The notes under the pieces: model-generated
The model's database searches: none
What the model saw: the letters and a program-made list of their open reading frames with translations, nothing else
What the model was told of the DNA's origin: nothing
Position numbers and translations under genes: made by a program
NCBI RefSeq assembly: GCF_947568905.1
Contig: NC_079172.1
Span: forward strand, 53,878,001-53,942,000
Length of the DNA: 64,000 nucleotides
Source of the DNA: Ostrea edulis
Lineage: Eukaryota
Direction of reading: 5' to 3'
In this document: piece after piece, positions 1,599-50,499 of the stretch
Layout of the letters: every line of letters starts with the position of its first letter
Numbering within the stretch: the first letter of the stretch is position 1

Positions 1599-2422
1599 AT
1601 GGTTGAGGTAAGGGAAGCTACTTTATACCACAATCATTTTGAATATGACCTGCTCTCCCTTCTTTTTTATGGATCTTAAAGGGGCATTACCTGTAAATTC
1701 GTCATCAAAAGTTGAATTCGGTGAAAATTGCTCTGTATTATATATTTCAGTAATAACACAATATTTAATTATTTTAAACACTCTTCAGCCTCAAAATAGG
1801 CACATGAATATGTGATTTTGGTGATTAGATAATTATTGTCTTGCAAGACAATGATTCTTCCTCATATATTTCTTTACGCTAAAAGAGGTTATATAACGTA
1901 GTTTTATTAGGCTTCTCTTGTTTTTGTACAAAATAAATGTTTTTATTAGTCAGTAATATATATTTCTATGCCATTGAGAGATTTTGAGAAAAAACGGTTG
2001 CTATCACTTTCAAAGCTAATGCCCCTTTACGTGTTTTCTTCCATTTCAGCATGGAGTCTTTCACTTCGACGACGACAGATTTGGTAATGTGACTGTGTAC
2101 AATAATATTTCCCGGCATCACATCGCTGATAAATCCAGAAATTCAGAATACTTGAACGTTGGACAAAAGTATATGGTGAACGGGCATAAAACGGACAGTC
2201 TCCAGAGTGGGCAGTCGCACAAAGTGCATTATGCTGATGATGTGGGAATTATTTCGAACAAAAACTCCCCTCCGAGTTCAATAAACGCGCTGGACAAAAC
2301 GACACAGAAAGAAATAAGTCGGAGAAGGCGTCGACGAATCTGTACAGTCATTCTTTTGTTATTACTGGCTTTAATTATCGGGTTTGGGATCGGACTACTA
2401 GTGTATTTCCTACTTCTAAACG
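1599..2422 (+). CDS. Gene A exons 1-2: cytoplasmic N-terminus and signal-anchor TM
   Basis: ATG GTT GAG|GTAAGG (phase 0) joins ttttcttccatttcag|CAT at 2050. Reads [11 protein letters not shown]...EISRRRRRR then [27 protein letters not shown], donor G|GTGAGT at 2422/2423. A polybasic run before the hydrophobic segment with no signal peptide indicates N-in type II topology (positive-inside rule). Confidence 0.8.
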
Positions 2423-5400
2423 GTGAGTAAATTTTCTCTAGTCATATCCACCTTCTAAAGTTCGTTATCATGGATTCATTGGTTCAATCGGTTGCTTCGG
2501 TTTTCCTCCGTAATTTTTTATATTCTCAGAAAATTTTCAGGGAGCATGTAGTCGCCGTCATGTCCGTCCGTCCGAGCCCATACCCCCTAAACCTTCCATC
2601 AGAAATTTATATAATTTATCACAAATGTTCCATGAGACAAGAACTTCTGAACAAAGGTCTTTTAATGTCATTTTGGAAAGGTTAAGGTCACTCAGAACAT
2701 ATAAAAGTTCCTTATTTCAACAAGTTTTTTTTATATTAAAGTTCCCATCTCCTAAACCTTTCATCAGAAATTTATCATAATTGATTACAAATATTCCTTG
2801 AGACAGGGACTTTTGGACCAAGGTCAAGTCGCACAGAACATATATACCTTAAAGTAAAAAGTTATCTATATCAACAAGTTTTTGAAAAGGAATTGATCAT
2901 ATATCACACAAATAAGTAATAAACATATGGCTTTCAGACAAAGGTCACTCAAGGTCATTTTGTAAGGTCAAGGTAATTCAGAACGTATAACTTATAGATG
3001 AAAAAATACTTCATATCAACAATATCCCAACAATTATTGATCGTTTGGACCAAGATCTCCTCAAGGTCAATTTTGGTAAGGTCAAGGTAACTAAAAATAT
3101 TTACCTTATACGGAAAATGTGCCTTATTTCAACAGTTTGTGAACAGGTATTGATCATATATCACACAAATAAATGATAGGGTAATGACTCTTAGACAAAG
3201 GTCACTCAAGGCCATTTTTAAAGGTCAATGTCACTCAACAATCAATATATACCTTATATTTGAAAAAGAAACCTTCGTTTCAACAATATCTCAACAGTTA
3301 TTGATCATTGTGCAAGTCATTCGTCATATGAAGTAGTTCATTGGTTTAAAATGCATTTCGGGGAGCATCCATCAATTAGTAGTTCATTGGTTTAAAATGC
3401 ATTTCGGGGAGCATCCATCAATTAGTAGTTCATTGGTTTAAAATGCATTTCGGGGAGCATCCATCAATTAGTAGTTCATTGGTTTAAAATGCATTTCGGG
3501 GAGCATCCATCAATTTTATTAATATTTTTGATCTATTCCAACGGGGTGGAGATATTGATTTCATTACAGCTGTTGGTTTCTCTTTCACGATTAGTGTAAG
3601 TTACAAATCATGTACGAACTATAACTCTGCTAGAATTATCTGAATGTTTCATATGATGTTGATCCTACTCGATAGGTTACTTAAACCAAAATAATGTCAT
3701 CAAAGTCACAAAAATGTAATATGGGCACCATATCTTGGAGTCTACTAGACTACCACCTATGCTTGCAATGGAGTCCAACTAAACTAATATCATATTACCC
3801 AAGGCTTATTTGACTATCATGGTCTTGTCAAAAGGGTCAAATTCATACCTTAATCAAGTGTTGAAATCTTAGTTGGGTAGTGACTTATATTTCCGTGTAA
3901 TTGCCTGGCGTGATTTCTATAAAGGTATCATATCATTGCCAAGGACCCAGAAGTAAGTCATTATCTTGAAATGGGATTATACGAATAGGGGTAAAGTCGA
4001 AGATCAATGAATGCCTCTGGGAATTAACTATGCTCTTCTTTCATACGCTACTTTAAAATCTTTCGCATGTCAATGCTCAAGACCTGTATCTTATATCACG
4101 TAATTTCAACAATTTTATGTTCACAGGGCAATGATTTGTAGAAATAGTCTTTGGCCTTTAACTTTGCTTGGCATACTTAGAATGACAATGCTTGTGCCCA
4201 TTCTGTGTCCCACGACCGAAATGATATAGCATGAAATGATAAAATTGCGCTAGGAGCAAGAACCGGAATAGCTTTCCATATATACATACATGTATATATC
4301 GTTTAAAGTCAGCATTTCGCACATTCTATGGTCGTTATAACGATATAGTTTGCCCCCCCCCCCCCCAATTGTCATTGGTTCAAATGCTGTCTGATGTATT
4401 TCATGTCAATTGTTAGACCGTTCTTTGCACACTGATTTTGAATACGGATTACTCCGTTCATCTGATCAAGATATATGGTGCACGGCGGGTGTGACCGGTC
4501 GACAGGTGATGCTTACTCCTCCTAGGCACCTGATCCCACCTCTGATATATCCAGAAGTTTGTGTTTCCCAAATCTTAATTTTGTATTCCTTAGGATTATC
4601 TCCCTCATGCATAGCTCTTATCCTTGGACGAATTTGGCTCCACTTTTTTGGCACGCTGTTTTTGGCTATATTTAGCTCTAAAACTTCATAGTTATTTCGG
4701 ATTTCAAACATTTCGGTTGAGCATTACTGAAGAGACATTATTTGTCGAACTGCGCATCTGGTGCATCAAAATTGGTACCGTATAAGTTTTACATTACAGG
4801 AGTTATGAGATTGATCACTGTTCGTTATCTTCGCCTTTTCATATATATATATATATATCTTTTTCTTTATAAAGCTAGTTGAATTTTTGCACTTTCATAA
4901 TGTAGAACTATGAATTGTTGTCATCAGAATTAAATATGTGTTACTACATATTTTGACACATCTCCTAGATTCTATAGAGGTGGGGTTTTTACTGAGCCTT
5001 AAAAACCCGCAATGTTAATACTCCGATACTACTTTACCTCAATCGTGACGTCACATCTGTTTACACAACTGGACGAGTGTGACCTCACATCTGCTTACAC
5101 AACTCGACGAGTGTGACCTCACATCTGCTTACATGTACACAACTCGACGAGTGTGACCTCACATCTATTTAAAAAACACAACGTCTGCTACCAAAAATGT
5201 AAAAGAATGAGCTATTGTTCCTGGAAATTGAAAATTATAAAATAGGAAGTTTGCTGACTGAATATCATGGAAAATGCTTGCCCTCGAACGTTGTTTCGAA
5301 GTGGACTTTGGAAGCACGGCCTGCTTTACCGCGCAATGATACGAGGCGGACATTTATCACGATATTCAGTCAATAACCTATAAATTATGAATTTTTTACG

Positions 5401-8400
5401 TTTTCTTTAACGAGTGTTGCAATAAAGCTAGACCAAATGTAAACATCGTTTGTTATCGAACGAATAAATATGTTTCATAAATGAAGTAGATTCACGAGTG
5501 ACAAAATTCGGACTTGATGATTTGCAATATATTGACATATCTGGTCAGGTTGGCTTTGACTATCTAATTGTTCAATCTAATCAAGTGTGCCTGACATTTC
5601 ACCCATTGGGCCAGTTTACGATACGAAATGTATCTATATATTAGTAGTATTTAATTTTGGTTTTTTTAAGTGAGCCTAGTGCTGGGACAATTTTAAGTCC
5701 AATCTGTGATTGTAAATGCAAAATGTGATATTATTTATAGAAAGTGTTATTTTATGTGATATTATGTCATGTCATTTGTTATTCTTTGTCTAACGTGCCT
5801 TTATCTGAATAAACATAATAATAATAATCTGAGCTTTGCAAAGTTGTAACTTTGTTCAAAAGTAAGCATATACATGACGGATATTGAGCAGCCCTGAATG
5901 CTTTTAAAGAACTTGATTAGAAAGGGAAATGGATAGAAGGCATGTGAAACATTGGTGAGAATCCATTGCTTGCTTTTTTTTTTCATACAATTTCAATACT
6001 TTGGGAATAATGAGGAATATTATCATATGTGCCTTTACAAAGAAGCTAAAAAAGTATGACGTCATAAGAAAAGATAGGTATATGACATGGACCCTATTGA
6101 TGATATGTGGGTTCCTTAAGCTAATTGTCATTATGTTCGTGCAATTCAGAGTTATTTTGAGGAAGAAAACTTTCATTTTTAAAAAAAATGAAATATTCTT
6201 GAAACACGTATAAACAATTGCTCCATGACTTTAATGGTCTTTACTAGTTGAAATTAGAAGTTGTTATAGATTGAAAAGTTGAAAATGTATCCATTTTTCT
6301 TGAAACACAATCTCTCTCGTTTTCAGAGGGAACTGGCGAAACCTTACAAGAAGCCCAGAAAGGTAAATAAGCAACTTTCATATTAGTGAATTAAAAGCAA
6401 TGGAATAAGTTACAAACGCTTTAGAATTTGGATTTTTTTTAATCATGTGTCTGTTTTACAGAATCTGTTATAGTGAAGCTTAAGCTACCAATTTTAAATG
6501 AAACATACACATCAGAAATGGGTGATATCACTTCCGGTGATTTTCGTCGAATATCAGAACCACTCTGTGAAGAGGTATTCTACTTCCTACTATTGGTTGC
6601 GATGACTTTACTCTTTATCATATAAATATTACACATCGCCTTTCATAAAAACATTTATTTTCTATTTTCGAACCTAATTTGTCTCTACTTTTTTATTAGA
6701 CATATGCTTATAACAATAATAATGATAATGACAAAAATATTGCTACTGCTAATAATGATTATCCGGTGTTTTCTTTCAGATGAAATTTTATTTTCAACAC
6801 GAAAAGGGCTTTGTCATGTGTAACGTCAATGAAATAAGGTAAATGACGAAATTAAGGTTGTTGAATTTAAGTAAGTGAAGCTTGCAGTACATATACTTAT
6901 AGTGTTCTACTAGTGGAAAACCATTTTTATAATTTCATCTTTCATTTTTCAGAAATGTTTCCAGATCAGTAGAATGTAAATGCAAATCAATCACACAGTA
7001 AGTAATGTTATCACATCAATCACACAGTAAGTAACACATCAATCACACAGTAAGTAACACATCAATCACACAGACATCAATCACACAGTAAGTAACACAT
7101 CAATCACACAGTAAGTAACACATCAATCACACAGTAAGTAACACATCAATCATACAGTAAGTTATGTTATCACATCAATCACACAGTAAGTAACGCATCA
7201 ATCACACAGTAAGTAACACATCAATCACACAGTAAGTAACACATCAATCACACAGTAAGTAACACATCAATCACACAGTAAGTAACACATCAATCACACA
7301 GTAAGTAACACATCAATCACACAGTAAGTAAAACATCAATCACACAGTAAGTAACACATCAAACAGTAAGTAACACATCAATCACACAGTAAGTAACACA
7401 TCAATCACACAGTAAGTAACATCAATCACACAGTAAATAACACATCAATCACACAGTAAGTAACACATCAATCACACAGTAAGTAAAACATCAATCAGTA
7501 AGTAACACATCAATCACACAGTAAGTAACACATCAATCACACAGTAAGTAACGCATCAATCACACAGTAAGTAACACATCAATCACACAGTAAGTAACAC
7601 ATCAATCACACAGACATCAATCACACAGTAAGTAACACATCAATCACACAGTAAGTAACACATCAATCACACAGTAAGTAAAACATCAATCACACAGTAA
7701 GTAACACATCAAACAGTAAGTAACACATCAATCACACAGTAAGTAACGATAACACATCAATCACACAGTAAGTAACACATCAATCACACAGTAAGTAACA
7801 TCAATCACACAGTAAGTAACATCAATCACACAGTAAGTAACACATCAATCACACAGTACGTAACACATCAATCACACAGTAAGTAACACATCAAACAGTA
7901 AGTAACACATCAATCACACAGTAAGTAACACATCAATCACACAGTAAGTAACACATCAATCACACAGTAAGTAACACATCAATCACACAGTAAGTAACAC
8001 ATCAATCATACAGTAAGTTATGTTATCACATCAATCACACAGTAAGTAACGCATCAATCACACAGTAAGTAACACATCAATCACACAGTAAGTAACACAT
8101 CAATCACACAGTAAGTAACACATCAATCATACAGTAAGTTATGTTATCACATCAATCACACAGTAAGTAACACATCAATCACACAGTAAGTAACATCAAT
8201 CACACAGTAAGTAACACATCAAACAGTAAGTAACACATCAATCACACAGTAAGTAACACATCAATCACACAGTAAGTAACACATCAATCATACAGTAAGT
8301 TATGTTATCACATCAATCACACAGTAAGTAACACATCAATCACACTGTATGTAACATCAATCACACAGTAAGTAACACATCAATCACACAGTAAGTAACA

Positions 8401-11400
8401 CATCAATCACACAGTAAGTAACACATCAATCACACTGTATGTAACATCAATCACACAGTAAGTAACACATCAATCACACAGTAAGTAACACATCAATCAC
8501 ACAGTAAGTAACACATCAATCACACTGTATGTAACATCAATCACACAGTAAGTAACACATCAATCACACAGTAAGTAATACATCAATCACACAGTAAGTA
8601 ACACATCAATCACACAGTAAGTAACACATCAATCACACAGTAAGTAACACATCAATCACACTGTATGTAACATCAATCACACAGTAAGTAACACATCAAT
8701 CACACAGTAAGTAATACATCAATCACACAGTAAGTAACACATCAATCACACAGTAAGTAACACATCAATCACACAGTAAGTAACACATCAATCACACAGT
8801 AAGTAACGTTCTCACATCAATCACACAGTAAGGTGTTCATATCACAGTCACAATATCTCTCAAAAATTACTCTATAGTTCAAGTATTCGTGGTCCTTTCA
8901 TTTAATCCAATCAAACACTGTCGGAGAAATCAATCAGATTTCAGTGATCTAAATAAGGCTAATTTGGTCTATATCGTAAGTAGAAATGATGTTATTGTCA
9001 AAATTTGATTCTCGTATCCAGCGACGCCGTTTCAAATTTAAGGTGTTTAGCATAGGTGATTCTTCCTTCGCCAGTCGCCCGGCATATAAAGTGAAAGTCG
9101 AGGTTTTTTTTCCGGATATGACTTTAAAACGGAGGTTCCGTGTCACTAGGCGTTGGCACAATAAAGAATGAAAGTAAGCGCCATGCATAGGTGAGAATGT
9201 GTGGCATCTTATCTAAAGCTGGTAACTATGGTGGCATATTTCTGCCTCCTATTTGCAAGTTATTTTTCTATAAATTATCTCAACATGCAAGATAATTTTG
9301 TTAACATGCAGCATAAATACATGTGTGTCAACCTGCAAGAAAAATATAATCAGATAAGAATTTGGAAAATTTTCAAAAATTATCAAAAATTGCCGACATG
9401 TGACTTCCATCATGCTAGATGCAACTTATTCATGTTGACATTCAACTTATTTATGTCAACATGCGAAATAAATATGTCGGCAGGCAACTTATTTATGTCG
9501 ACATGCAAGATAGATATCTGGACATGCATATTTATCTCATATGTCAACATAAATAAGTTGCATGTTGACATAAATAAGTTGTATGTCAACATAAATAGGT
9601 TGCATGCTAACATAAATAAGTTGCATGTCGACATAAATAAATTGCATGTCGACATGATTAAGCTGCATCTATCATGTTTGAAGTCACATTTGGGCGATAA
9701 TTGATAATTTTGGAGAATTTTACAAATTCTTATCTGATTACATTTTTCTTGCATGTCAGTATAGTTGTTGCATGTTGACATAATTATCCCGCATGTTGAC
9801 ATATTAATCTTGCATGTAGATGTAGCGTGCAACCCCAAAAATATATATATAAACAGTAAGAAGCGGATGGGCACCCTCAGTTAACTTTCTGAGGTACTAA
9901 TATTTTATTTCAATATATACATATAATGATTGGTAAAGGAAAAACTTGACTATTTGTCTTGAATTAAGTATGTACAGGATTTCTGATGCAGCTGGTTCTA
10001 TCTCTCTGAGCTCGGCTCATACAGCTCGGCTCTCGTCGCTCTTTCCGACTCTGGCTCTTCGTGGCTCCGGCTCTTACTGGTTCTTCGTGGCTCCGGCTCT
10101 TACAGCTCGGCTCTTTCTGGCTCTTCGTGACTCCGGCTCTTACAGCTCGGCTCTTTCTGGCTCTTCTCGACTCCGACTCTTACAGCTCGGCTCTTTCAGT
10201 GCGGTATTGCAATTATCTAATATTCATACAAAGCCAGGAAAGACTTGTGCAGTCACGTCTAAGGCGTTGTATAATGTTAAAAACAATTGCAATTTATAAA
10301 ATAAATTACCTTTCTAATTCCACGTCTTCACTCTCTGCCGTCACTGCATCAACTGCTTATCGCCCGAAATCTCCCGCTTATATACTACTTACAAAAACGC
10401 CATCTAGCGGGGAAACTATAACATTTAGAATACCCAAAGGCGGAGTAGGAATTTCCGAATTGTCACATAGACATAAATTATAGAAAAATAACTTGCATAC
10501 AGGGGGCAGAAATATGCCACCACAGGTAACGTCTCTACACGAGTGAAAAATAATTATCGAATGAGACGTAGAACAACAGACATGTATGGATTATTACATC
10601 AACAAAAAATGTACTGTGACGTCATGCTGTAGTGTCATGATTGTAATATTACATCATTTAGAGATTGTTACATTGTATATTGCATTATTCTCAGCGAAAC
10701 ACAGCTCGAATCAATCGTCAGTTCTCGTTAAACTCTGAGATAATGAAAAATGAATTCTACATTTTTGTCGGATGTTGGATGGCTCCCTCCCTCAATCTCT
10801 TTCTTCAATTCCTTGCAGTCAGTCTGGCCATTCCTCGCTGGAGGTGGTAGTCGATCTTACTTTCGTGGAGTCAATGAGAGGAGAAGATATTCTAAGGATA
10901 TTGGATACCAAAGCCAAAAAACTGTTCTTTGATGGATTCGAGGTTGTATTGATTAAGAATTTCATCGTGGATATTAAGGGAAGAGGTCAAAATGGTACGC
11001 CATTTGAATGAAAATATTCTGTGAATCATTTTTTCTTGAACAACTCCATTTAGTTTACTAATATTCATTTCTTCCTTAAAATTGATTAGATGCTTGTATA
11101 CCCTCACCTTGCCAAAACAGTGGACTTTGTCAGACGACAGACGATGGCGATATAGCCTGTGCATGCCCAACTGGATGGACCGGAAGTCGATGTGAATTTG
11201 GTTTGTTGAATTTAAAATTACTTACAAGTCACAAATTGCTAAACCTTTGTACAATGTACGTAATTTTTCGGATTCGTTCATATTAATTTCTGTGAATGGT
11301 TATTCTTGTTATCGATCACAGACGTCAATACCTGTATCCAGTTTCCTTGTGGAAACAACGGAGTCTGTCATGAAAAACTCGGAGAAGATTCGTGTATATG

Positions 11401-14400: not shown

Positions 14401-15062
14401 TGACCGGTCGACAGGGGATGCTTACTCCTCCTAGGCACCTGATCCCACCTCAGGTGTGTCCAGGGGTCCGTGTTTGCCCAACTATCTATTTGTATTGCTT
14501 GTAGGAGTTATAAGATTGATCACTGTTCGTTATCTTCACCTTGCATGTGTAATACAATTATTGTTAAAAAGAATTCTGTTTTCTTGCTTAAGACATTGAT
14601 GAATGTAACCTGGTCCCATGTCATAACGGAGGGACCTGTCAGAACACACAAGGATCCTACCTGTGTTCCTGTGACTTGGGGTGGATTGGTAAACACTGCA
14701 ATACTGGTAAGAGTTCAATTTTATTGATCCCGATCTGTTCAAGAGAGAAGCATCAATCGTGATTTAGAGAATGATGAAGTACTTAGATTTGGAATACAAG
14801 GCTGTCATTCTTCATCAATACATGAATATATGTATATATATATATATAATTCAATAAAAAAAGCAGGAAAATATACAGTTCCAAAATATATTTAAATCAC
14901 TAGCGCTTTCTGGATTTTAACATCCATCCTCAGGTGAATACAAATTAATAAGATGCTAAAATCCAGAAAGCGCTAGTGATTTAAATATATTTTGGAACTG
15001 TATATTTTCTTGCTTTTTTATTGAATTATTTTGACTGTGTGGTATCAACTCTTTCTATTTGG

Positions 15063-15109
<47 letters not shown>

Positions 15110-15168
15110 AAATTGTTGTTTTAAAAAATCAGTGTCCGGTATAAGATATTAAAATAAACAGTAAACAA

Positions 15169-15211
<43 letters not shown>

Positions 15212-36200: not shown

Positions 36201-39200
36201 ATGTGAGGGAGAGTATTTAATGCGGTTTCATACTGACATGACGTCATATAAGGATTATGAGGTTGCAACAACTATATGAGTAAATGTATCTGATTGAACA
36301 GCCGATCAGCCACACAAAGAAAGATTTATCAAACTTTCACAGATACAATAAAAAAGATGCTGTGCTTGCAATGTTCATTCTGATTAAAAGTAACTTGAGT
36401 AATAGCCCTACCTTAAGAATTGCAACAACTTCATTTATTAAGTCTCAAGTTGTATTATGTGCAGAATGCAAACTCTAGTTGGTTTTTAGGGGCAGTGAAC
36501 GTTTTCTTTCTTCATTGATGAATTAATACTCGTTTCCATTCCTAGATATAAATGAATGTTTAAGCACTCCCTGTGTACATGGTACCTGCACCAATAAGTT
36601 AGGATCTTTCCAGTGTTCCTGTGAACTAGGATGGACGGGAACTATGTGTGACCAAGGTATATGTACTGATCATTCAATCGTGCTAAACCAGACTTACATA
36701 GAGAAACCGATCCCTGAAAAGATGTATCGCTATATGTATCTTCTAAATATAAAATACAAATACAGTAAAAAAAAATTGTATTTCATTTTTATGAAGATTA
36801 TATACAATGTATATTCTATGCAGTATACAACTTCTGTTATTTAACTTTTGTCGGTGAAAATGAACAAGAACGCTAATTTTATTCATTCATCAATACTAAT
36901 ACATCTAATTTAGTGTTTCTCTTGTATAAATGTAAATGAATACTCTGTTGCCCTTTCTAGATATAAATGAATGTTTAAGCACTCCCTGTGTACATGGTAC
37001 CTGCACCAATAAGTTAGGATCTTTCCAGTGTTCCTGTGAATTAGGATGGACTGGGTCTCTGTGTGACCAAGGTATATATGAATATATATCAATTTTCATC
37101 ACTCAGCATAACAAAGATTTCCCCTGCATGATGAAATTTTTCTTTCTTTTTTTATTCTTGATTTAACTTATCAACCATCGGTTTCTTATTCTCAAAATCT
37201 ACAATTTAGACTGTCTATACAGTACTGTTGTTTAGCAAATGAGAAGAAAATGTTTTCCCATTATATTGTATTTCATATGTCTTTTTCGATGTTATAGATA
37301 TCAACGAGTGTTTACTACTTCCGTGTGTCCATGGGAAATGCAGCAACAATATTGGATCCTTTAAGTGTACGTGTGATACAGGATGGACTGGAAATCTGTG
37401 TGAAATAGGTGATTATGCAAATAGTATTACTTCAATTAACAAAATGTCTGCACTTTCATTGCTTCCAAAATTAAATGAACAAGAATGTCGTACATTCTTG
37501 GAATATATATCAAGAAGTGTCAGACATTTTCGTGTATGAGCGGTCTCTATTTGAACAACTAATTACAATGAGCGTTATGTAATCAATGAATTTAATAAGC
37601 ATGATCTGGAAACGTATAAAGCACAAAACATTTCGGTGATTGGCAGTGATTACTTTGCTTCCGCACAGAATATACTGGTTGTTGCTTGTAATAGTGCTCA
37701 CCACATTCTGAATATGACGTTCCTTACAGATATTGATCACTGCTCCCTGAGACCGTGTATCCATGGCGCGTGTACAGACACTGGCTCCACGTATAGCTGT
37801 ACTTGCGATCCAGGCTGGACCGGACAAAATTGTAGCCAAGGTGATCCCAAGATATACTAAACTTATTGTTAGGTCATCTGACTAAACTCAGGTGACGTAT
37901 TGCAATTGGTTCTCGTCCGTCGTCGTGCGTCGTCCGTCATGCGTTACCACTTGAACATTTTTAACTTCTTCTTGATAACCTCTATTCCAATTCTTTCAAA
38001 TTTGATATGAAGCATCTTTGGGACAAGGGGGATATAAATTGTAAATTTCAAGACTCCTGCACCATTGGGTCTAAGGTTGGGGCAAAAACTGCCCGAAGTT
38101 GACGAATTTTCAAAACTCTTCTTATCCACACATGTGTAAGAAAAACTAAATGCATAAAAATGTAGAGCAAGAAGTTCTCTGCCAAAATTGTAAAATTGAT
38201 GATCCCCGGGTGGGGGTTCTGATCCCAGGACGGGGCCAAACTTTGTATTTAGTGTTTTTGTGTAAAACACTTATATAACATCTTCTTTAGTGCTATTGAT
38301 ACAAAATTGAACCTAAATGGATTTTAGATAGAGCAGGTAGTCCTTTACCAAAATTGTAAATTTGATTATCCCAATGGTAATGATTTTGGTATCAGGGTGG
38401 GGCCAATATGGTCAGTTATGAAATGAATGAACAATAAAAATTTTTAACCTCTTGATAACTACCATTCCAACTCTTTTCAAATTTGGTATGAAGCATCTTT
38501 GGGACAAGGGGGACATAAATTGTAAATTTCAGGACCCCTGCACACCTGGGGGTGGCAAAAACTGCCCAAAATTGACAAATTTTCAAAAATCTTATTTTCT
38601 ACAACCGCACATGAGCAAGAAAAACTAAATGCATATTGATGTAGAGTAGGAAGGCCTCTACCAAAATTGTAAATTTCATGATCCCCGGGGTAGGGGTTCT
38701 GAACGCCAGCGTGGGGTCAAACTTAGTATATAGTGTTTATGTGTAAAACATTTAAATAACATCTTCTGATAGTGCTATTGATACTAAATTGAAACTAGAT
38801 GGAGTTGGTATTTAGGAGTAAGTGGTACTTTACCAAAATTGTAAATTCCATGATCCTTGAAGTTAAGGGTTTGGTTTCGGGGTGGTGTCAAAATTATGAT
38901 AACAATTTGAAGGACTTCTTTAAGTTTGCTGACATTGTATTAAAGGTGTAGATAACGAACAGTGGTCAATCTCGTAAATCCCATAAGCAATACAAAATAG
39001 GTAGTTGGGCAAACACGGACCCCTGGACACACCAGAGGTTGGATCAGGTGCCTGGGAGTATAAAATCTAAATGCATACTCAGGAATAGCAGAAAAGTATG
39101 TACAAAAGATGGCGAATTTCACAACCCAAGGTTTTTACTCTAGGATGGGTCCAAATTAGTCATATCTTTAATACAATTGACTGCTCAATATTTTGGATTT

Positions 39201-42200
39201 GTGATACTACTATCAATTAAATGATGCATTTGTATAACCCTTTTTAATTTTGCACCGGGGGAGGGCATATATGTTTTACAAACATCTCTTGTTTTCGTTT
39301 TTCAGACGTTTGATATAACTATTATAATAAGCGTTATGAATGCAAAACTGGAATAGAACAGGCGTTGTTGACAGAATCAAAACAATAAAAAACAAGGTTG
39401 GAAATTTAGTTAGTCCTCTCTTTAATTCTAAAACATGCGCTTCTTTCAGATATAAACGAATGTGTTACATTAGCTCCCTGTGCCAATGGAGGAACTTGTA
39501 CAAATGTTGACGGAACATTCATCTGTGCATGCCCATTGGGATGGACAGGAACAACTTGTAGGACTGGTAAGTAACAAAATCAATTGATTTCCTATTTCAG
39601 CAACATATCATTGAAAATTATGTATTTTATCCCATGTAACTGAAAACATATTTCTTTGGAAAAAGTATTCTCGTTTTTTTTCTGCATTAAAAATCAATTA
39701 GTGTATGAAATCAGTAGAAAATGAATGGTTGTCTGTGTTTGACAGATATTGATGAGTGTCTTGTGTCTCCTTGTCTTCATGGCAACTGCTCAAATGTGTT
39801 TGGGTCATATTCTTGTTTGTGTGAGGCAGGGTGGATTGGAGCCAACTGTAGTCAGGGTTTGTATCGAATATTTTAATTATCTGTTCCTATTCCTAATACC
39901 TAACTTAATTTTTTGGTATCTTTGCAAAGATATATATTGCTATCCCTAGCTTGGCACAAAAATGATGATATTCTTAATTTGTTTTAGTAAAGGGTGTATT
40001 AATTTGGTCGCGAGTTTTTCCATAAATGAACGTGCATTAATTCATTTTATCTAGATGTAGACGAATGTCTTCAGATCTCTTGTTTGAACAATGGTACCTG
40101 TGTGAACACACCGGGTTCCAATTACTGCCAATGCCCAGTTGGCTTGTCTGGTGACAGGTGCGACTTAGTAGGTACGTGGACTACTGACTAACTCGATGTT
40201 TCAAGCTGCAAGTCTAACGATGTTATATCATACTTATTCCATCAACTTTTAAATACAGATATCACGGATATTACGATGACCTTTGACATCGTTAACTTTC
40301 CTTGGGTGGATGATCTTGCGGACAACTCGTCAATAATTTTCCAAAGCTATGCTGGAAGATTCTGTCGAGACGTAAGTACATTTGGATGATACGACATTTA
40401 CAGTTAAATTTGTGAGTTCCTCATTACTTGCTTACTTTTTGAATATGATGTACCTTTATATTGACTTCAATGGATGTTGGTTACAGGTAGACATAATCTT
40501 TGCCTTTCGCGCAGCAGATTACCCCGGTTATCTGTACTGCAAAGTTGCATCCTTTGGGTAAGTCGAAAGACAAAGCATTGCATGAGGATTTCTAAGGAAC
40601 ATCAAACAAAATCAACTGCATTCACGTTTAAAATAGATTTGTGGTATTTCCTTTCATCAAATAATGCTTTAATGAATATCATGATCTCCATTTACAGACA
40701 AGACCCTCAGAACATATCGATAGTCCTCACATTTGGGGGACATGAATACACCCCAGGATTTGATAAACAATTGAGAGAAGCTATATTTGAGACAACTCGG
40801 GAATATCGATACCTGAGTTACATTGTTCATTTGATTGGTGATGTTCTCATTGTTTCCGGCAGAATAGAACATGGTGATTGTCCAGTTTATGATATTGTGA
40901 AACACAAGTAAACATTTTTTAATAAAAAGTTATATGGATGAAGAAAGGAAATTTATGCATGAAATTTAGGTGTACAGAATTTATCCATTTCAATTTAAAG
41001 AAAAATTATTCTGAAGAATGGAAATAAAATAATGGAATTGTACTTATCAACAATCGGAGACCTTCATATGCAAAAGCATTATATAAACACAACGATAATG
41101 CTTGCCTTAATCACGCATATTTTTGTTCGATGACAGATTCCTGGATCAGCAATATGACGATGTATATATATGACGATTTCCAATACCGACCTGAATACTC
41201 CGATATAAATTCCACAGAATTCAAATCGTTTGAAAGTTCTTTCTGCAATGATGTGAGTATTCCTATTGTTGTTGGGTGTTTTCTTTTTGGTAACGTTTGG
41301 CTACTGAAAAGCTGATATATTGTACGCGCTGGATATATTTACTGTTTATTGTGTTTAATACAAAGGTTCAGATAGTTGGGGAGTAATTATTGCTACAAAA
41401 ATATGGTTCTTTTTTTTATTTACTGATTTCAATTTTTCAGATTGACTCCTACTTTAAAAACGGCAATTTGACATCAAGATACTATCGATGCTTCTTTGAT
41501 CATATAGGGTAGGTTATTTTTTGCATAGATCTTAATACACTGTTTCAAAAATGGTTCAATGCATAACACTTTAAGTGTACAATATTAATCATAATATGGT
41601 TGAATTTGAAATATACTAGTTAAGTGTATACGTTAAGTATGATTAGCATATATAATGATAAAATGCTCGTCAATATTTCAAACAAATTTTATTAGCTTGT
41701 TGCTGAAGTTTGAAGATGGAGACAGAAAGATCTTTTCAAGTTTCAGTCTGTCCAATGACTGATTCTTGGCATATAATTTTCGGGAAATTAGAATATTCTG
41801 TAAATATATCTCGTATATTTGCAGAAATCTACTGTTCTTGTCTCAGATCTTGATTTTCTGAGTTTTGATTTGCCTCACACCCCATAGAACCACCGCACAT
41901 CCCCACAAACCAGTCTCGAAAACGTCCAAAGAATATCACACAATACGATAATACGTAAAATAGCTATTCGTTAGTAACATAGTTACATCGCATTTATGAC
42001 ATTTCTGTTGTTTAATCTATAATATCCCACTTTCTATCACTACAGGACTGTACAGCCACACACGCTTACATTTATCATGGTATTCAATGGTACAGAAACA
42101 GTTTCACGTGACGTAACCACTGAAGTGATTAGTGCTGGAGCTCAGCATTATAAAGTTGGAAATTTGGATTTGATGTTCATTGGTTCTCAATTTGTTTATT

Positions 42201-45200
42201 TCCATCGTGGGTACAATAACATCGCCATTAACATATCAGATTTTACAACCACCTTCGCTCCTCTGACGACAGAAAGTCCACGTGAGTTACATTTAAGATT
42301 TATTGCTTGATTGTATATTGTTTAACGTCCCTCTCAAGAATATTTCACTCATATGGAGACGTTACCACTGCCGGTGAAGGGCTGCAAAATTTAGGTCTAT
42401 ACTCGGCACTTACGGCCTTTGAGCAGGGAGGGATTTTTATCGTGTCACACCTGCTGCGACACGGGACCTCGGTTTTTGCGGTCTCATGCGAAGGACCGCC
42501 CCATTTAGTCGCCTCTTACGACAAACAAGGAGTACTGCGGACCTATTCTAACCCGGATCCCCACGGAGGGGTTACGTTTAAGATATTTTAGATGATAAAA
42601 TCACCAAATCATTAACATTGTTCAACGTTTTTATGGACAAATCTTGAGTACTGTTCTTTCCAATATGGCTTGATAATTATGTAATATGTAATACCACTTG
42701 CAGAAGGTTGAAATACATTACCTTGTAGATATCATACAGAATGAATTTGTTTATACGTGTATATTCTGCATTTTGTAGACATGTCATTTTCAATTTCTCC
42801 ATTTCTTTACAGTGAAAACGCTGATCAACATAACATTTGTACTGAAAAACTTAACCTACACGCAGCAGTTGACAAACACAGATTCCCAAGAGTTCAAGGC
42901 TCTGGCTTACCCTTTTTGTAGATATGTAAGTTTTACCACAAGCAGTTTGTGTAACAATTTGCTAAACCGATTATGTAAAAACAATAATGAGAACTTCCTA
43001 GCCATTTAGTCCTTATGATTGAAGCTTGTAATGTATAAGTTTTTATGTCAAGTTAAAAGATTTATGCATATCGCAAGATTTGAATTTCATCGCTTTCAAA
43101 CTCGAAAATTACGCAAACTGTTTCATTAAAAACACATGTGAAGCAGTTTTAGGCATGAAATGAATTAATTTTGCTGACAAAATTAAAAAGTTTAGAAACA
43201 TGCGATGTGTCCTTTAAGAAATATAATTCATTGAAAAAGCATAGGTTTTTTTTTTACTAACAAAGCAAATGGTAAATGTAATGTAGATATTAATGTATCA
43301 AACTTTCGTAGAATTAGAAATCAGGTTTTTCCTCCAGCACTTCATTTCATTGTTGTCATTATATTTCTATTCAGTTAACGGATCTTTACTCAACTCGGGA
43401 CCGATTCAAATATATCTACGAGTTATGTCAAGTGATGGCGTTCATGTGAGTAGAATCAGTATGATAACTTGTGATACATTTTATCTTCACAATTACGAGT
43501 ATTTCAGACATCATTCATCAATGTATTTTCTTTTTTTTCAGCCAAGAAAACGGAAAAGATAAAATCAATTTCATTCTGCAGTTTAAGGGGGCTCAAGATC
43601 CTACACTACAAGAGTTTATCTATGGAATCCTTATAGAGAACGCCCCACGGGCAATAGTTAATGGCGAAATATCTATAATCGTGGGTCCACTGGCAGTATT
43701 TGACGACTCCCTGGCTATCAACCAGGCTACCGTCACATACTCGCTGCCACCAGGTGTGTATACTAGTAAGCATGCGCAAAAAGCATACCATAAGATCGTC
43801 ATGAAATATTATGTCTGTGGTGTGAACTTGCAACATTAAAATGAATAACGGTTTCTTTGTCAAATTATTCCACTTTACAACTCTGTTTTAAAAGAAATAC
43901 CCAACTAGTTGTTAAACATGTCCCCTTATTATAGAGCGTAATATTTACATATATTACTAGGATAAAAAAAAAACCAAATTGGATCAAATCATAGCAACAA
44001 TAATATACGATTATTAAAATTCCGTATATTTTACAAAAATTGATGAATGATGATTAGTTCGTGTTCTAGTAAATAATCTGAGATAAGTATTCTAGTCAAG
44101 TTGAAGTTTACACACTCTTCCCATGCATGTGAAAATCGTCTGATTCAATCTAAACCTCCTTGTATTCGGTCGGGTACTAGGTTTGATTTCCTGACTTGCA
44201 TTGTACATATTTATTAGATCCACATCTCCGGTGAACCCCATGGTAACTAGAACAATCCGTTCGTTTGCTACAGAAATGATGTCACTTTTGGCTTGTGCAG
44301 CGAATGTTTTCCATAATATTGGTAGTCTTGCTAAGTGTCTATAGTTGCAAAACATAACACAAGTATTTGTCGGATATTGCATTTGACAATAGAGAATACA
44401 CTAAGGGGAGGTCCAGACAGTTAAGACAACACACGTGTCTGATATGTAAATCCCTGTGTGGTGAGCATTCGACCAACACTAGATGACGTCACAATAATGC
44501 TGTAAAAAGTGGTCTGTGTCATCGTGAAATGTGAATACATCAGACACGCTCAATTTAAATAATTCAATGCTGGCAATGACACATTTTTATTGATTTATTC
44601 TACATTGAAAAACATTTATAATTCATTATTGTGCGTTTAGCCTACATACTTAGGGGAGTTGTGTCCCTTCTATTAGTCACTCAAAGTAGGATACAAATAC
44701 ATGTACCTGATTAGCATCACAGTACATGTATGTGTATATCACAGTGTGTGTACAGACGTGCAAGAATGTGTTAGGGCTGTAAGTCTAGACTTTATAATAA
44801 ACTTGATCAAAATTACGAAATGCATCAGTGAAGCGAACAAGAAATGGCAGTGAAGTGTAAAATTGATTTTGATTTTGTGAACATCATATATGAAAGGAAT
44901 TGGACGGCAAGCTTGAAAATATTAAGATACTTCTGAAAATATCAGGTACCAAGTCAAAATGGATGTAAAGAACATTTTAAGCTGATATGTTCTAAAGCAG
45001 CGGACCTGTAAATAAACAAGGAAGTATTGTAGAAGTGTCACAAAATATAGCACCGAAACTGTCATATTGTATATCATTTTTCAAAGAGCTGTTGATTTAA
45101 CTGCGACAAATAGTGTTTGTATGCAAAACTTTTCTCAATGACAGACACAGCATAAAAAAAACATGCACATAAAATTGTATCTCGCCTAACTGATCATTGG

Positions 45201-46876
45201 CGTGTCCCATCTTTAAAAAGGGTTTTCATTTTACATATGGTTGCAGTAAATGGCTTCAATGTTGTAGAGCAACGCCTCCATCTTCAGTTCATTCACATTT
45301 ATTTCATTTAGTATATATAGCCTCAGGCAATCTATTCATTAGCCCTTTTTAGCTCACCTGAGCCGAAGGCTCAACTGAGCTTTTCTGATTAAAATTTGTC
45401 CGTTGTCTGTCGTCGTTGTAAACTTTTCAACCAAACTTGACACAAAGAATCCTTGGGTGAAGGGCTTTCACGTTTGTTCATTTCCCCTTCAAAAAATAAT
45501 AACAAAAATGCAAAAATAGGGTGGGATCATTTAAAAATCTTCTCAAGAACCACTGGGCCAGAGGAGCTGAAATTTACATGAAAGCTTCCTGATATAGTGC
45601 AGATTCAAGTTTGTTCAAAACTAGAAATTTACATGAAAGTTTCCTGACAGTGCAGATTCACGTTTCTTTAAACCATGGTCCCGTGGATAGGTTGGGGCCA
45701 TAATAGGAATTCAAAGTTTTACATAGCCCAGTAGCTAAGTACTTCGTTACTAGCTTGAAAATACGGATGTATATTTAATTGTTGTTATAAAATTTAGAAA
45801 TTCATTTCAAAATTAAGGATTATCTCCCTCATGCATAGCTCTTATCCTTGGATGAATTTGGCTCCACTTTTTTGGCACGCTGGTTTTGGCTATATTTAGC
45901 TCTAAAACTTCATAGTTATTTCGGATTTCAAACATTTCGGTTGAGCATCACTGAAGAGACATTATTTGTCGAAATGCGCATCTGGTGCATCAAAATTGGT
46001 ACCGTATAAGTTTTACATGGGAATAAATTGGGAAAATCTTTAAAACTCTTCTCAAGAATCACTGGGCCAGAAGTTTGTTCAAATCATGCCCTCCGGGGGT
46101 AGGATAGGGTCACAATAGGGGATCAAAGTTTTATATACAAATATATAGGGAGAAAATCTTTTAAAATCTTCTGATGAAGAATCACTGGACTAGGAAAGTA
46201 CAAATTTACATGAAAGCTTCCGGATATAGTGTAGATTCAAGTTTGTTAAAAGCAGGGCCCGCGGGGGTAGGATGGGGCCATATTATGGGATCAAAATTTT
46301 ACATACTAATAAATAGAGAAAATCTTTAAAAATCTTCTTCTCAAGAACAATTAAGCCAAAGAAGTTTACATTTACATGAAAACTTTTTGACATAGTGCAG
46401 ATTCAAGTTTGTAAAAACATGGTCCCCGGGGGTAGGTTGGGACCACAATCGGGACCAAAGTTTTACATGCAAATATAGATGGAAAATCTTTAGACATAGG
46501 CCAAGGTGACTCGGGTGAGTGATGTGGCCTATGGGCCTCTTGTTATTTTTTGATAACCCTTTCGGACGATAAAGTAATCACATCATCATGATGTGGATCA
46601 TTTCCATACTGCAGCACTCTGAGATGCGCTAACTTATTCCATTCACCTATTTGTTTAGATCTTACAACGCCCAATACTCTGTTGACGGCAGCGCCCCTAG
46701 TGACGGACCCCTGTAAAGATGCCCCAAACAACGCCAACCTACCTGTTCCTGGAAACTGCCATCAGTTCTATAAATGCTCTTTTGGGATTTCCTATCTCTT
46801 TGAGTGTCCGGGACAGACCGTCTTCTTTCCCAATAGAAACCAATGTGATAACAACGATGACACAATTAAATGTTAA
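1599..46876 (+). CDS. Gene A: giant type II membrane protein, TM - SEA - 50xEGF - 3xSEA - ChtBD2 (about 2,610 aa, about 60 coding exons)
   Basis: Hand-spliced phase-consistent model. Exons: 1599-1607 (MVE|gtaagg), 2050-2422, 6327-6362, 6462-6574, 6780-6838, [6953-6997 optional], 10819-10994, 44 EGF exons in 11322-40171, 40259-40371, 40487-40557, 40698-40873, 41137-41252, 41441-41508, 42046-42281, 42813-42925, 43375-43445, 43542-43753, 46659-46876 (TAA). Sum is 7839 nt without the optional exon, one open frame. All junctions are GT-AG except one GC-AG. There is an in-frame TAA upstream of the ATG at 1503. Confidence 0.85.
1680..2026 (+). mobile_element. TTAA-flanked MITE (Kolobok-like) filling most of intron 1
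   Basis: ttaa|aggggcatta ... taatgcccct|ttac: 10-bp TIR, 347 bp. Confidence 0.6.
2514..3515 (+). mobile_element. Helentron-associated-type non-autonomous element (HINE/DINE-like)
   Basis: gtccgtccgtcc microsatellite near the 5' end, internal degenerate aaggtcaaggtca satellite units, and a cggggagcatcc 3' motif repeated 4 times. Confidence 0.55.
3333..3514 (+). repeat. 46-bp perfect tandem repeat, 4 copies
   Basis: gtagttcattggtttaaaatgcatttcggggagcatccatcaatta at 3333, 3379, 3425, 3471. Confidence 0.95.
4593..4796 (+). mobile_element. 5'-truncated copy of the retrozyme-like element, nested in a Penelope-like 3' tail
   Basis: Aligns to the 28.3-28.5 kb copy. The host tail is interrupted at ttgtattcctta | caggagttatgagattgatc. 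Confidence 0.72.
4721..4764 (+). ncRNA. Hammerhead family 1, mutated copy
   Basis: Same motif, but GAAA reads GAAC (A15.1 to C at 4750) and helix I has an extra G.U. Confidence 0.65.
5045..5166 (+). repeat. About 31-bp tandem repeat, about 3.5 copies
   Basis: gtgacctcacatctgcttacacaactcgacgagt. Confidence 0.8.
6327..10994 (+). CDS. Gene A micro-exon plus first SEA-like domain
   Basis: 36-nt exon 6327-6362, then 113-nt ([38 protein letters not shown]), 59-nt ([19 protein letters not shown]) and 176-nt ([34 protein letters not shown]...) exons with phases 1-0, 0-2, 2-1. The pattern strand - Y/W-xx-(E/D)L-x-D-xx-S-xx-F - helix matches the SEA N-terminal signature. The end at 10994 is preferred over 10985 because it gives the same 176 nt as SEA2. 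Confidence 0.7.
6985..8832 (+). repeat. 23-bp minisatellite (catcaatcacacagtaagtaaca), about 80 copies
   Basis: The array begins inside the 3' end of the candidate exon 6953-6997. Variants include 29-bp units and gtatgt/gtacgt forms. Confidence 0.95.
9070..9195 (+). mobile_element. SINE central-domain fragment
   Basis: ggatatgactttaaaacggaggttccgtgtcactaggcgttggcacaataaagaa. Confidence 0.45.
9275..9820. repeat. Imperfect palindrome of about 550 bp built from 21-bp units (caacttatttatgtcaacatg)
   Basis: The left and right arms align in reverse complement. Centre at about 9520. Confidence 0.75.
10005..10198 (+). repeat. Degenerate GC-richer tandem repeat of about 39 bp (ctccggctcttacagctcggctctttctggctcttcgtg)
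   Basis: About 5 degenerate copies. Confidence 0.7.
11322..31345 (+). CDS. Gene A EGF repeats 1-26, one per phase-1 exon
   Basis: Exon starts: 11322, 11882, 12508, 14593, 15322, 16620, 16812, 17179, 17956, 18389, 18741, 19072, 22443, 22659, 22861, 23511, 24106 (114 nt); 27363, 27642, 27874 (111 nt); 29040, 29802, 30256, 30647, 31008, 31232 (114 nt). Most read D-(I/V)-(D/N)-E-C...C...C-x-N-xx-G-S-(Y/F)-x-C-x-C-xx-G-W-x-G-xx-C (Ca-binding EGF consensus). Confidence 0.93.
12720..14543 (+). mobile_element. Degenerate 5'-truncated Penelope-like retroelement RT (RT C-terminal, probably the N-terminal-endonuclease Naiad type)
   Basis: Motifs across broken frames: [65 protein letters not shown] (YIDD mutated), [35 protein letters not shown]. 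Frameshifts and TAA stops are present. No endonuclease follows the RT. A conserved non-coding tail ends at ttatcttcacctt. Confidence 0.78.
14846..15029. repeat. Near-perfect inverted repeat (78-79-bp arms, 3 differences, 27-bp spacer) between (TA)n tracts
   Basis: Arms at 14846-14924 and 14952-15029. Contains hammerhead family 2. Confidence 0.9.
14897..14937 (-). ncRNA. Minimal type I hammerhead ribozyme (family 2)
   Basis: Minus strand TCAC-CTGAGGA-TGGAT(GTTAAA)ATCCA-GAA-AGCGCT-A^GTGA: helix I 4 bp, helix II 5 bp (U-A closing pair rather than the usual G-C), palindromic helix III, CUA triplet. Confidence 0.68.
15531..15826 (+). mobile_element. Penelope-like 3' fragment, diverged
   Basis: Matches 14185-14543 with deletions. 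Confidence 0.72.
19925..20490 (+). repeat. 56-bp tandem repeat, about 10 copies
   Basis: gtgtctttattttgtgtgttatgtctattctttgtcgtggaatacttcctggtggt. Confidence 0.95.
20680..20965 (+). pseudogene. Decayed Tc1/mariner transposase fragment
   Basis: Broken frames give LGICSNRP...[19 protein letters not shown] (Tc1 VLFSDESRF motif) and [10 protein letters not shown] (GGSVMVWG motif). Confidence 0.5.
21465..22415 (+). repeat. About 23-bp minisatellite (ttgtttacatgttttagggagtg), about 40 copies
   Basis: Ends about 25 nt before the EGF exon at 22443. Confidence 0.95.
24504..26051. mobile_element. TTAA-flanked non-autonomous DNA transposon (Kolobok-like), 1548 bp
   Basis: ttaa|aggacacatc ... gatgtgtcct|ttaa, plus a perfect 19-bp subterminal inverted repeat gtgacgtcatatgcgacct at 24687 and 25852-25870. 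Confidence 0.72.
28085..28263 (+). mobile_element. Penelope-like 3' tail, abutting the retrozyme-like element tail-to-tail
   Basis: caggggatacttactcctcctaggcacctaatccaacctctgg...cttcactttt. Confidence 0.72.
28264..28652 (-). mobile_element. Hammerhead-bearing retrozyme-like element: 351-nt monomer plus 38-nt terminal direct repeat
   Basis: taatgtaaaacttatacggtaccaattttgatgcacca occurs at 28264 and 28615 (period 351). No ORF. Confidence 0.7.
28296..28339 (-). ncRNA. Hammerhead family 1, mutated copy
   Basis: Same motif on the minus strand. The cleavage triplet AUC is changed to AGU, which also breaks the helix III palindrome. Confidence 0.65.
31435..32241 (+). CDS. Gene A single 807-nt exon encoding seven EGF repeats (27-33)
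   Basis: tttcag|AT at 31435 to G|GTAAAT at 32241. 269 codons = 3x39 + 4x38 aa EGF units, no internal introns. Confidence 0.95.
32461..40171 (+). CDS. Gene A EGF repeats 34-50, one per phase-1 exon
   Basis: Exon starts: 32461, 32967, 33725, 34070, 34342 (114 nt); 34549 (111); 34778 (114); 35307, 35535, 35884, 36546, 36961, 37298, 37730 (111); 39450 (117); 39746 (111); 40055 (117). Each has six Cys and AG/GT ends. Confidence 0.93.
33190..33432 (+). mobile_element. tRNA-derived SINE
   Basis: A-box-like gtggtagtgattaagtgg, B-box gagttcgagccc, central ggatatgacc...aaaacggaggtc domain shared with 9110-9170 and 42305-42567, tail gagacgtaaaacaaccaa. Confidence 0.6.
37866..39293 (+). mobile_element. 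Helentron-associated-type element with internal satellite repeats
   Basis: ttaggtcatctga...tcaggtgac subterminal hairpin, gtccgtcgtcgtgcgtcgtcc microsatellite, repeated aaaattgtaaatttcatgatccccgggg units, 3' ggggagggcata...ctcttgtt. Confidence 0.62.
38945..39060 (-). mobile_element. Penelope-like 3' tail nested in a Helentron-type element
   Basis: Reverse complement of the tail (gataacgaacagtgg...gggcaaacacggacccctggacacaccagagg). Confidence 0.72.
40259..43753 (+). CDS. Gene A three tandem SEA-like domains, three exons each
   Basis: 113/71/176, 116/68/236 and 113/71/212 nt with phases 1-0, 0-2, 2-1. First exons read [77 protein letters not shown] and [38 protein letters not shown]. Confidence 0.78.
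42305..42567 (-). mobile_element. SINE-like element with a non-tRNA structured 5' head
   Basis: The minus strand shares the ccgaggtcccgtgtc...acgataaa core and gggacgttaaac tail with the 33.2-kb SINE. The head is ccgtggggatccgggttagaataggtcc...tgtcgtaagaggcgactaaatgggg. Confidence 0.6.
43064..43213. mobile_element. Isolated right end of the same TTAA element
   Basis: Matches 25901-26051, including gatgtgtcct|ttaa. Confidence 0.75.
45725..46018 (+). mobile_element. 5'-truncated copy of the retrozyme-like element, nested in a Helentron-type element
   Basis: Aligns to the 28.3-28.56 kb copy. aagttttacat is present on both sides of the insertion. Confidence 0.75.
45945..45988 (+). ncRNA. Minimal type I hammerhead ribozyme, intact core (family 1)
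   Basis: GCATCA-CTGAAGA-GACA(TTATT)TGTC-GAA-ATGCGCAT-C^TGGTGC: helix I 6 bp (one G.U), CUGANGA and GAAA cores, helix II 4 bp, self-complementary helix III, AUC triplet with cleavage after 45982. Confidence 0.8.
46659..46876 (+). CDS. Gene A last exon: peritrophin-A type chitin-binding domain (ChtBD2/CBM14)
   Basis: ttgtttag|AT phase 1. [19 protein letters not shown]-x14-C-x5-C-x9-C-x12-C-x8-C-stop, with aromatic residues (HQFYKC, VFFP) at the usual positions. Confidence 0.82.
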
Positions 46877-47170
46877 ATCGTTCTTTTGTTGTCTGAGAAA
46901 TCCATTTTCATGGACTCATTTGATATATTTATTCAATATCTCATGTTTATATCATCGTATCATAATTTTGTCATAATATGATATTCTATCATACTTTGTT
47001 ACCATTTTCGTATTTTAGTGCAGATTTACCGTGCTTTAGGTTAGTTTTGTTAATGATCTTTTACATTTCGAGCTATCCGTTCAGTTTTCGCAACGGCCTT
47101 TGTATCATTATTATGTAGAGACACAAGTCTTGACATTTTGACTGTTGAAATGTTTTACATATTGGACACA

Positions 47171-47176
47171 AATAAA
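47171..47176 (+). terminator. Candidate poly(A) signal of gene A
   Basis: AATAAA about 295 nt after the stop. The sequence is AT-rich, so this is weak on its own. Confidence 0.3.
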
Positions 47177-50299: not shown

Positions 50300-50499
50300 N
50301 NNNNNNNNNNNNNNNNNNNNNNNNNNNNNNNNNNNNNNNNNNNNNNNNNNNNNNNNNNNNNNNNNNNNNNNNNNNNNNNNNNNNNNNNNNNNNNNNNNNN
50401 NNNNNNNNNNNNNNNNNNNNNNNNNNNNNNNNNNNNNNNNNNNNNNNNNNNNNNNNNNNNNNNNNNNNNNNNNNNNNNNNNNNNNNNNNNNNNNNNNNN
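50300..50499. other. Assembly gap (200 N)
   Basis: Run of N. The true distance between genes A and B is therefore uncertain. Confidence 1.

Follow-up and report, generated by a model that had tools for sequence, protein, structure and literature searches.

Drosophila Dumpy is a giant membrane-anchored protein with hundreds of EGF modules that attaches the epidermis to the chitinous cuticle; its EGFs are accompanied by DPY modules, a ZP domain and an anchor at the C-terminus, and SEA and CBM_14 domains are absent. Teneurins are type II membrane proteins with eight tandem EGFs, which are followed by an NHL domain, a YD-repeat shell and a toxin-like C-terminus. EGFs combined with a SEA domain near the anchor are found in the membrane mucins MUC3/12/13/17 and MUC16, in TM-agrin and in enteropeptidase, the latter two being type II; the membrane mucins are type I and carry long PTS domains. 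A preliminary description of the locus analyzed here had stated that large EGF arrays are normally found in type I or secreted proteins, a rule that has to admit the teneurins as an exception.

The window, i.e. the whole stretch of 64,000 nucleotides of Ostrea edulis DNA that was analyzed, has a G+C content of 32-38%, corresponding to AT-rich animal DNA. Based on exon-by-exon phase analysis, 59 exons on its plus strand (2050-46876) form a single open frame of about 2,634-2,635 codons, with a sole stop at the end (Table 1). Phases and stops were recorded by script for each exon, while domains that are split across exons were judged via database homologues. All splice phases are compatible from the TM exon to the CBM_14 exon, and a non-GT donor was found in only one of the 58 introns (a GC-AG intron with GCAAGT at 11996, after the third EGF exon). 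The single phase-consistent frame running from the TM through the EGFs to ChtBD2 and stop, as proposed earlier, was thereby confirmed. The domains follow the order cytoplasmic tail, RRRRRR, TM, SEA, 51 EGFs, three further SEA domains, Thr/Pro linker, CBM_14 and stop. The single chitin-binding tip of the earlier proposal stands, and the predicted protein has at least 2,634 residues (approximately 2,640), compared with the 2,600 amino acids given earlier. We read this locus, with a probability of roughly 0.7, as one mollusc gene for a membrane glycoprotein that crosses the membrane once with its N-terminus inside (type II) and carries a stalk of 51 EGFs and a CBM_14 tip, a putative tether or spacer. 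That TM, SEA, EGF array, three SEA domains and CBM_14 belong to one gene is in itself highly probable.

Table 1. Predicted features of the EGF gene, with positions as counted in the window.
Feature	Position	Strand	Observations
Candidate first mini-exon (preliminary description)	1599-1607	+	ATG GTT GAG, then donor GTAAGG; three codons
Tail and anchor exon	2050-2422	+	About 97 hydrophilic cytoplasmic residues, RRRRRR, 27-residue signal-anchor TM; donor phase 1
SEA1 exon a	6462-6574	+	Weak Pfam SEA match (E 0.07); residues 136-174 of Pecten P0021 align; phase 1->0
SEA1 exon b (59 nt)	6780-6838	+	Size, phase (0->2) and motif as in the b exons of SEA2-4
SEA1 exon c	10819-10994	+	Residues 215-263 of Pecten P0021 align; phase 2->1, joins EGF1
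EGF array	11090-40171	+	51 modules, 45 phase 1-1 exons, 1,930 codons
SEA2	40259-40873	+	Exons 40259-40371, 40487-40557, 40698-40873
SEA3	41137-42281	+	Exons 41137-41252, 41441-41508, 42046-42281; exon c present in relatives' transcripts
SEA4	42813-43753	+	Exons 42813-42925, 43375-43445, 43542-43753
Last coding exon	46659-46876	+	Thr/Pro linker, six-cysteine CBM_14 (ChtBD2), TAA stop
3' UTR	46877-47190	+	AATAAA at 47171; poly(A) site at about 47190, inferred from the L002 contig

The tail and anchor exon shows 72-88% identity in relatives, with conservation spanning the exon from acceptor to donor, and its TM aligns with the TMs of Pecten, Mizuhopecten, Lottia and a paralogue in the same genome. 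A hydrophilic tail, a basic cluster, a single TM and the lack of a signal peptide characterize the protein family described below and are all present in the window. The positive-inside charge pattern, together with the N-termini of the homologues, indicates a type II topology. At the other end, the stop codon follows directly after Cys6 of CBM_14, in line with the earlier claim that there is no C-terminal TM. In the relatives, conservation sets in exactly at the 2049/2050 acceptor and does not include the methionine within the TM exon, suggesting that the true start codon lies upstream. Applying simple rules, 1599 is the sole ATG-to-donor candidate of phase 0 within 1-2049 and remains a candidate start; no conservation of the corresponding mini-exon was found. 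Homologues of the family begin with a methionine 64-100 residues ahead of the TM. A word search with the TM exon returned only unspliced genomic ORFs of relatives.

Further upstream, a non-coding block of approximately 160 nt (846-1007) is shared with the metagenome contig L001, where it lies at the same distance from the TM exon. It may represent a promoter or a 5' UTR exon; as a first coding exon it was discarded, having no conserved ATG or donor.

The SEA domains are encoded by a recurring trio of exons (a, b and c, with phases 1->0, 0->2 and 2->1), which is present in four copies, one before the EGF array and three after it. Scored singly, the SEA a-exons reach 12.8-19 bits and thus stay below the Pfam PF01390 cut-off of 26.4; the spliced orthologue P0010 (94% identical) scores 37.7 bits against the same cut-off, and the colinear homologues P0021 and P0034 score 113 and 216 bits, respectively. 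Using tblastn with P0021, SEA1a, 1c, 2c, 3a, 3c and 4c were matched in order. The Lottia protein P0034 matches SEA4a and SEA4c with 44-45% identity and E values down to 1.4e-11 (44% and E 1.4e-11 for its residues 2047-2109 against SEA4), and, across the family, the distal SEA domains are 30-45% identical to SEA2-4 of the window. At the end of SEA3c, a donor shifted by +4 (42285), which is used in the contigs L002 and L003 of relatives, would lead to a stop in the window, so that GTGAGT at 42282 is the productive donor here.

Several introns contain repeats. Between SEA1b and SEA1c, a 23-nt minisatellite with about 78 copies extends over 7012-8807, and its unit contains the splice-donor-like sequence ACAGTAAGT. 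The 3.3-kb gap between EGF13 and EGF14 harbors two tandem arrays (19928-20490 with 56-nt units and 21468-22414 with 23-nt units), which generate long spurious Cys-rich ORFs. The same repeat ORF is found in two different introns (4615-4782 and 45839-46006).

Searching with a strict six-cysteine EGF pattern gave 51 matches, all on the plus strand between 11095 and 40161, i.e. one more than the 50 counted in the preliminary description. The minus strand of the window had none, and a looser pattern added none on either strand. Seven of these modules are encoded by one exon of 807 nt (31435-32241), and the remaining 44 each have an exon of their own, 111, 114 or 117 nt in length. All EGF exons have a length divisible by three and an AG acceptor, and all but the one with the GC donor mentioned above are followed by GT. 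The codon split at the exon junctions encodes Asp in 40/44 cases, which means that the calcium-binding consensus D-x-D/N-E-C is completed only by splicing these exons in series. Overall, the N-terminal consensus D/N-x-D/N-E/Q-C is present in 47/51 modules and the beta-hydroxylation consensus C3-x-D/N-x4-F/Y-x-C4 in 46/51; some modules also carry O-fucose, O-glucose or EOGT-type motifs, and the linkers between modules are two residues long, as in Notch. The 7-EGF exon scored 169 bits with Pfam EGF (PF00008) and 168 bits with EGF_CA (PF07645), and all single EGF exons that were sampled exceeded 21.5 bits. Most of the modules are thus predicted to be of the calcium-binding EGF type.

Two neighboring EGF exons (36546-36656 and 36961-37071) share 95.5% DNA identity, which corresponds to a very recent tandem exon duplication. 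This pair illustrates how the array grows: duplication of symmetric EGF exons, one by one, can extend one protein from 0 to 67 modules.

The last coding exon matches CBM_14 (Pfam PF01607) with E 8.8e-10 and 39 bits (cut-off 22.1) over profile positions 1-53 of 53. Its cysteine spacings of 14, 5, 9, 12 and 8 residues are canonical, aromatic residues are present between C2 and C3 and after C4, and the nearest chains with a solved structure are CBM_14 proteins. The tip is therefore predicted to be a canonical chitin-binding module. In comparison with relatives, dN/dS of this exon amounts to 0.05-0.065, with dN of 0.08-0.09 (0.025 for SEA4c) and saturated dS. By this measure the CBM_14 frame is under purifying selection, and the low dN compared with the saturated dS suggests that it was translated through most of that history. 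The protein prediction P0009 seemed to read the CBM_14 exon in another frame, which was discarded as an artefact of the gene caller, as the TGA of the contig had been read as Trp.

With respect to transcription, six sequencing runs contained the 807-nt exon, none of which is recorded as RNA. The four best of these six were mapped to 41400-47250 and showed even intron coverage, identifying them as genomic DNA; split joints in these four runs stem from intronic repeats only. Three intervals (42184-42575, 42968-43359 and 45320-46690) stood out in each of the four DNA runs by their extremely high k-mer depth, which points to high-copy transposable elements.

A search of representative proteins with SEA4c, on the other hand, revealed contigs assembled from public runs of a related genus, of which L002 and L003 belong to one species and L014 to a sister species (91% identical). 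All three join SEA3c, SEA4a, SEA4b, SEA4c and CBM_14 at exactly the junctions of the window, including 43753|46659. In L002 and L014, an intron and its acceptor are retained upstream of SEA3c, and L002 becomes a poly(A) run about 20 nt past the AATAAA. Based on this intact acceptor and the terminal poly(A) run, we favor an interpretation of L002 and L014 as partly spliced polyadenylated RNA over a processed pseudogene or retrocopy; in either case, their junctions record real splicing.

These data bear on the question whether the continuous frame is a modelling artefact, with the CBM_14 exon being part of another gene downstream or the TM exon part of another gene upstream. The long introns (4.0 kb after the TM exon and 2.9 kb before the CBM_14 exon) and the multi-CBM_14 gene located nearby on the minus strand (53.6-55.8 kb) would fit such a split. 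However, the CBM_14 exon has a frame without Met that begins at a phase-1 acceptor fitting the SEA4c donor, and the transcripts of relatives join it to SEA4c. Moreover, TM and SEA occur together in single models of three genera, two homologues cover the complete span from TM to CBM_14 in one model, and the two CBM_14 regions are only 24-27% identical. We thus consider separate genes very improbable. In addition to the intact frame, the transcripts of relatives, the purifying selection, the paralogue and the single-protein homologues all agree with the type II one-gene plan put forward previously.

The neighbor itself lies tail-to-tail on the minus strand (53665-55776). One exon-like ORF at 53665-54246 encodes two domains of the CBM_14 type (Pfam E 2.3e-22), another CBM_14-like match is located at 55612-55776, and a coding 51-nt tandem repeat extends over 54063-54441. 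The product resembles a secreted protein of the peritrophin type. Between the two genes, the window contains an N run at 50300-50499.

The contigs of the related genus are also damaged. In L002 and L003, the SEA3c/SEA4a junction has gained 4 nt and the linker has lost 1 nt, and each of the two contigs has a different nonsense codon. In L014, both junctions are in frame as in the window, but SEA4c has +1 nt and two nonsense codons are present. The 3' part of the orthologue thus seems to be decaying in this genus. Could the oyster gene likewise be decaying or unexpressed? These frameshifts and nonsense codons, together with the finding that 0/6 runs with the 807-nt exon are recorded as RNA, would be compatible with such a fate. 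In the window, however, 59 exons are free of stops and broken splice sites. Furthermore, genomic contigs of the runs X1 and X3 span 46516-47209, and with it the last exon, without an indel, and the sole variant within the CBM_14 domain (46744; X1 and X4) is synonymous. Decay of the oyster gene is consequently an extremely improbable explanation. The decay in relatives does not touch the intact exons of the window, although it demonstrates that the tip can be lost.

As judged from its domain order and sequence matches, the gene is an unusually large member of an existing, uncharacterised mollusc family, whose plan consists of a type II anchor, a juxtamembrane SEA, a variable number of EGFs, SEA and usually a C-terminal CBM_14. 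The type II SEA/EGF/CBM_14 architecture is accordingly not unique, since homologues in the databases already display the same predicted plan. The number of EGFs varies widely, from 0 in limpet and abalone and 7-17 in scallop proteins to 51 and 67 in the pair of paralogues found in the oyster genome. In Mizuhopecten yessoensis, LOC110458370 (P0037; 1,862 aa) comprises TM, SEA, about 15-17 EGFs, SEAs, a Thr/Pro linker and CBM_14 (27.4 bits). Pecten maximus LOC117342008 (P0021) and its orthologues in Argopecten and Ylistrum (approximately 1,145 aa) place the TM at about 97-125, followed by SEA, seven EGFs and three SEAs; these pectinid proteins end after SEA4 without CBM_14, which suggests that the tip is dispensable in some lineages. 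Only pectinids were retrieved when the SEA block of P0021 served as query in a word search. Lottia gigantea LOTGIDRAFT_232880 (P0034) has an N-terminal anchor, eight SEA stretches and a terminal CBM_14 but no EGF. Likewise, proteins of Haliotis and Gigantopelta (P0024, P0031 and P0028, annotated as 'mucin-16-like' or uncharacterized) contain many SEAs and a terminal CBM_14 without EGFs. A Thr/Pro linker followed by CBM_14 as final domain is common to the window and to P0024, P0028, P0031, P0034 and P0037. One match of the representative search, the TPR/NACHT protein P0018, was spurious.

The paralogue (G000:C9:41367001-41447000, loci L006-L013) is located on the same chromosome at a distance of 12.5 Mb. 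It encodes a similar TM exon, SEAs, 67 EGFs, more SEAs and, about 10 kb past the last SEA, a phase-compatible CBM_14 exon with a stop. Among its EGF exon groups, 62/63 are of phase 1-1.

It can be asked whether the main products of the gene are shorter than the full frame, through EGF exon skipping or alternative 3' ends, with many isoforms lacking the full 51-EGF stalk or the CBM_14 tip. All EGF exons are symmetric (45/45), so that skipping some of them could yield shorter isoforms. Beyond its donor, the SEA4c frame continues for 28 codons until it reaches a stop (43834-43836; P0008), and an end at this point would resemble the pectinid models, which stop right after SEA4. Against this, the CBM_14 frame is strongly conserved, the models of the paralogue, Mizuhopecten and Lottia retain the terminal CBM_14, and the contigs of the relatives use the SEA4c-to-CBM_14 junction. 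We therefore regard predominantly shorter products as unlikely, though the idea deserves attention.

How might the full-length, membrane-anchored protein act? In calcium-rich fluid, the calcium-bound array would form a semi-rigid stalk on the order of 100-150 nm, which would hold the chitin-binding tip far from the apical membrane. At a length of 2.5-3 nm per EGF module, as known from fibrillin and Notch, the stalk would measure about 130-150 nm; the rod of 125-150 nm in the preliminary description, with a tip projecting past the glycocalyx, is likewise conjecture. Via the tip, an epithelium that secretes chitin would be tethered to, or spaced from, its chitin scaffold. The shell-forming mantle is the most plausible such epithelium, and the protein may end embedded in the insoluble matrix, like its limpet relative. 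Such a role as tether or spacer between epithelium and chitin matrix is put forward tentatively, with slightly less than an even chance of being correct. The limpet protein LOTGIDRAFT_232880 corresponds to the entry Lotgi1|232880, which was described as a major acid-insoluble shell-matrix protein that contains a peritrophin domain (aa 2140-2200) in addition to several SEA domains (PMC3374290). Based on these limpet shell data, the mantle can be considered the candidate tissue.

The same data lend themselves to another interpretation, in which the oyster protein is mainly a shed or secreted component of the shell matrix, the anchor serves for delivery only and the ectodomain is built into the chitin-protein framework. 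Here, the limpet member with the same N-terminal anchor is the main precedent, and tandem EGF proteins were reported to be strongly adherent to GlcNAc polymers (PMC11697411). However, the self-cleavage motif G/SVVV is absent from all exons of the window, with only loose look-alikes in three homologues, and no extracellular furin-type site was found in the window protein. The motif marks a subset of SEA domains capable of autoproteolysis and does not define the domain. Further, the tail is 72-88% conserved despite saturated synonymous sites, which argues for an intracellular function. We consider a mainly shed or secreted protein a serious possibility that is nevertheless doubtful. With neither a G/SVVV motif nor a furin-type site in the window protein, the membrane-anchored limpet relative may reach the shell matrix via a sheddase or by incorporation of the whole molecule.

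The conserved cytoplasmic tail could also belong to a chitin-sensing immune or signalling receptor, which would recognize fungal or parasite chitin and signal via this tail; a SEA domain near the membrane is likewise known from force-sensitive receptors. Nevertheless, Pfam revealed no recognisable signalling domain in the tail, and the relative in the limpet belongs to the structural proteins of the shell, making a receptor improbable.

Returning to the tether or spacer, a more specific version would see the 51-EGF protein and its 67-EGF paralogue as calcium-stiffened spacers or rulers. They would link the apical membrane of the shell-forming epithelium physically to newly formed chitin, define how wide the mineralising space is and signal load to the cell via the conserved tail and the force-sensitive SEAs. 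This is speculative and rather unlikely; if true, the number of EGFs would be an evolvable length dial (0, 7, 17, 51, 67). The mechanical and spatial coupling of the mantle epithelium to the chitin scaffold in the growing shell is poorly understood, and the family offers a concrete, testable candidate for it, joining a membrane anchor to a chitin hook by a long stalk whose length is adjustable, with one member abundant in limpet shell. The gene also illustrates that the chitin-binding tip was retained in certain lineages and lost elsewhere. Annotators should be aware that genes of this type will probably be split, or receive Notch-like, fibropellin-like or mucin-16-like names.

Compared with the known systems, the oyster array shares the calcium-binding EGF sequence type with Notch, fibropellin and fibrillin, but the gene lacks LNR, NOD, heterodimerisation, ankyrin, TB and avidin-like parts, and its orientation is opposite to that of Notch, with the TM N-terminal to the EGFs. 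Orientation and EGFs are shared with the teneurins, and Pfam EGF_TEN matches the 7-EGF exon, whereas the non-EGF exons of the oyster ectodomain encode only SEA and CBM_14. In contrast to membrane mucins, TM-agrin and enteropeptidase, the gene has no protease, LamG or mucin domain and no G/SVVV. As the defining parts of each are absent, the oyster gene, on its predicted domains, is not a Notch, fibropellin, teneurin or mucin. Pif, BMSP, peritrophins and the squid chitin-binding beak protein have the six-cysteine peritrophin-A domain in common with the oyster tip; these proteins are secreted and usually contain several CBM_14, whereas the oyster gene has one, placed on a membrane-anchored stalk. 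Without any claim of homology, the closest functional analogy is provided by Dumpy, and if the reading as spacer or ruler were true, the oyster protein would be the molluscan equivalent of Dumpy, with the chitin hook as part of the molecule.
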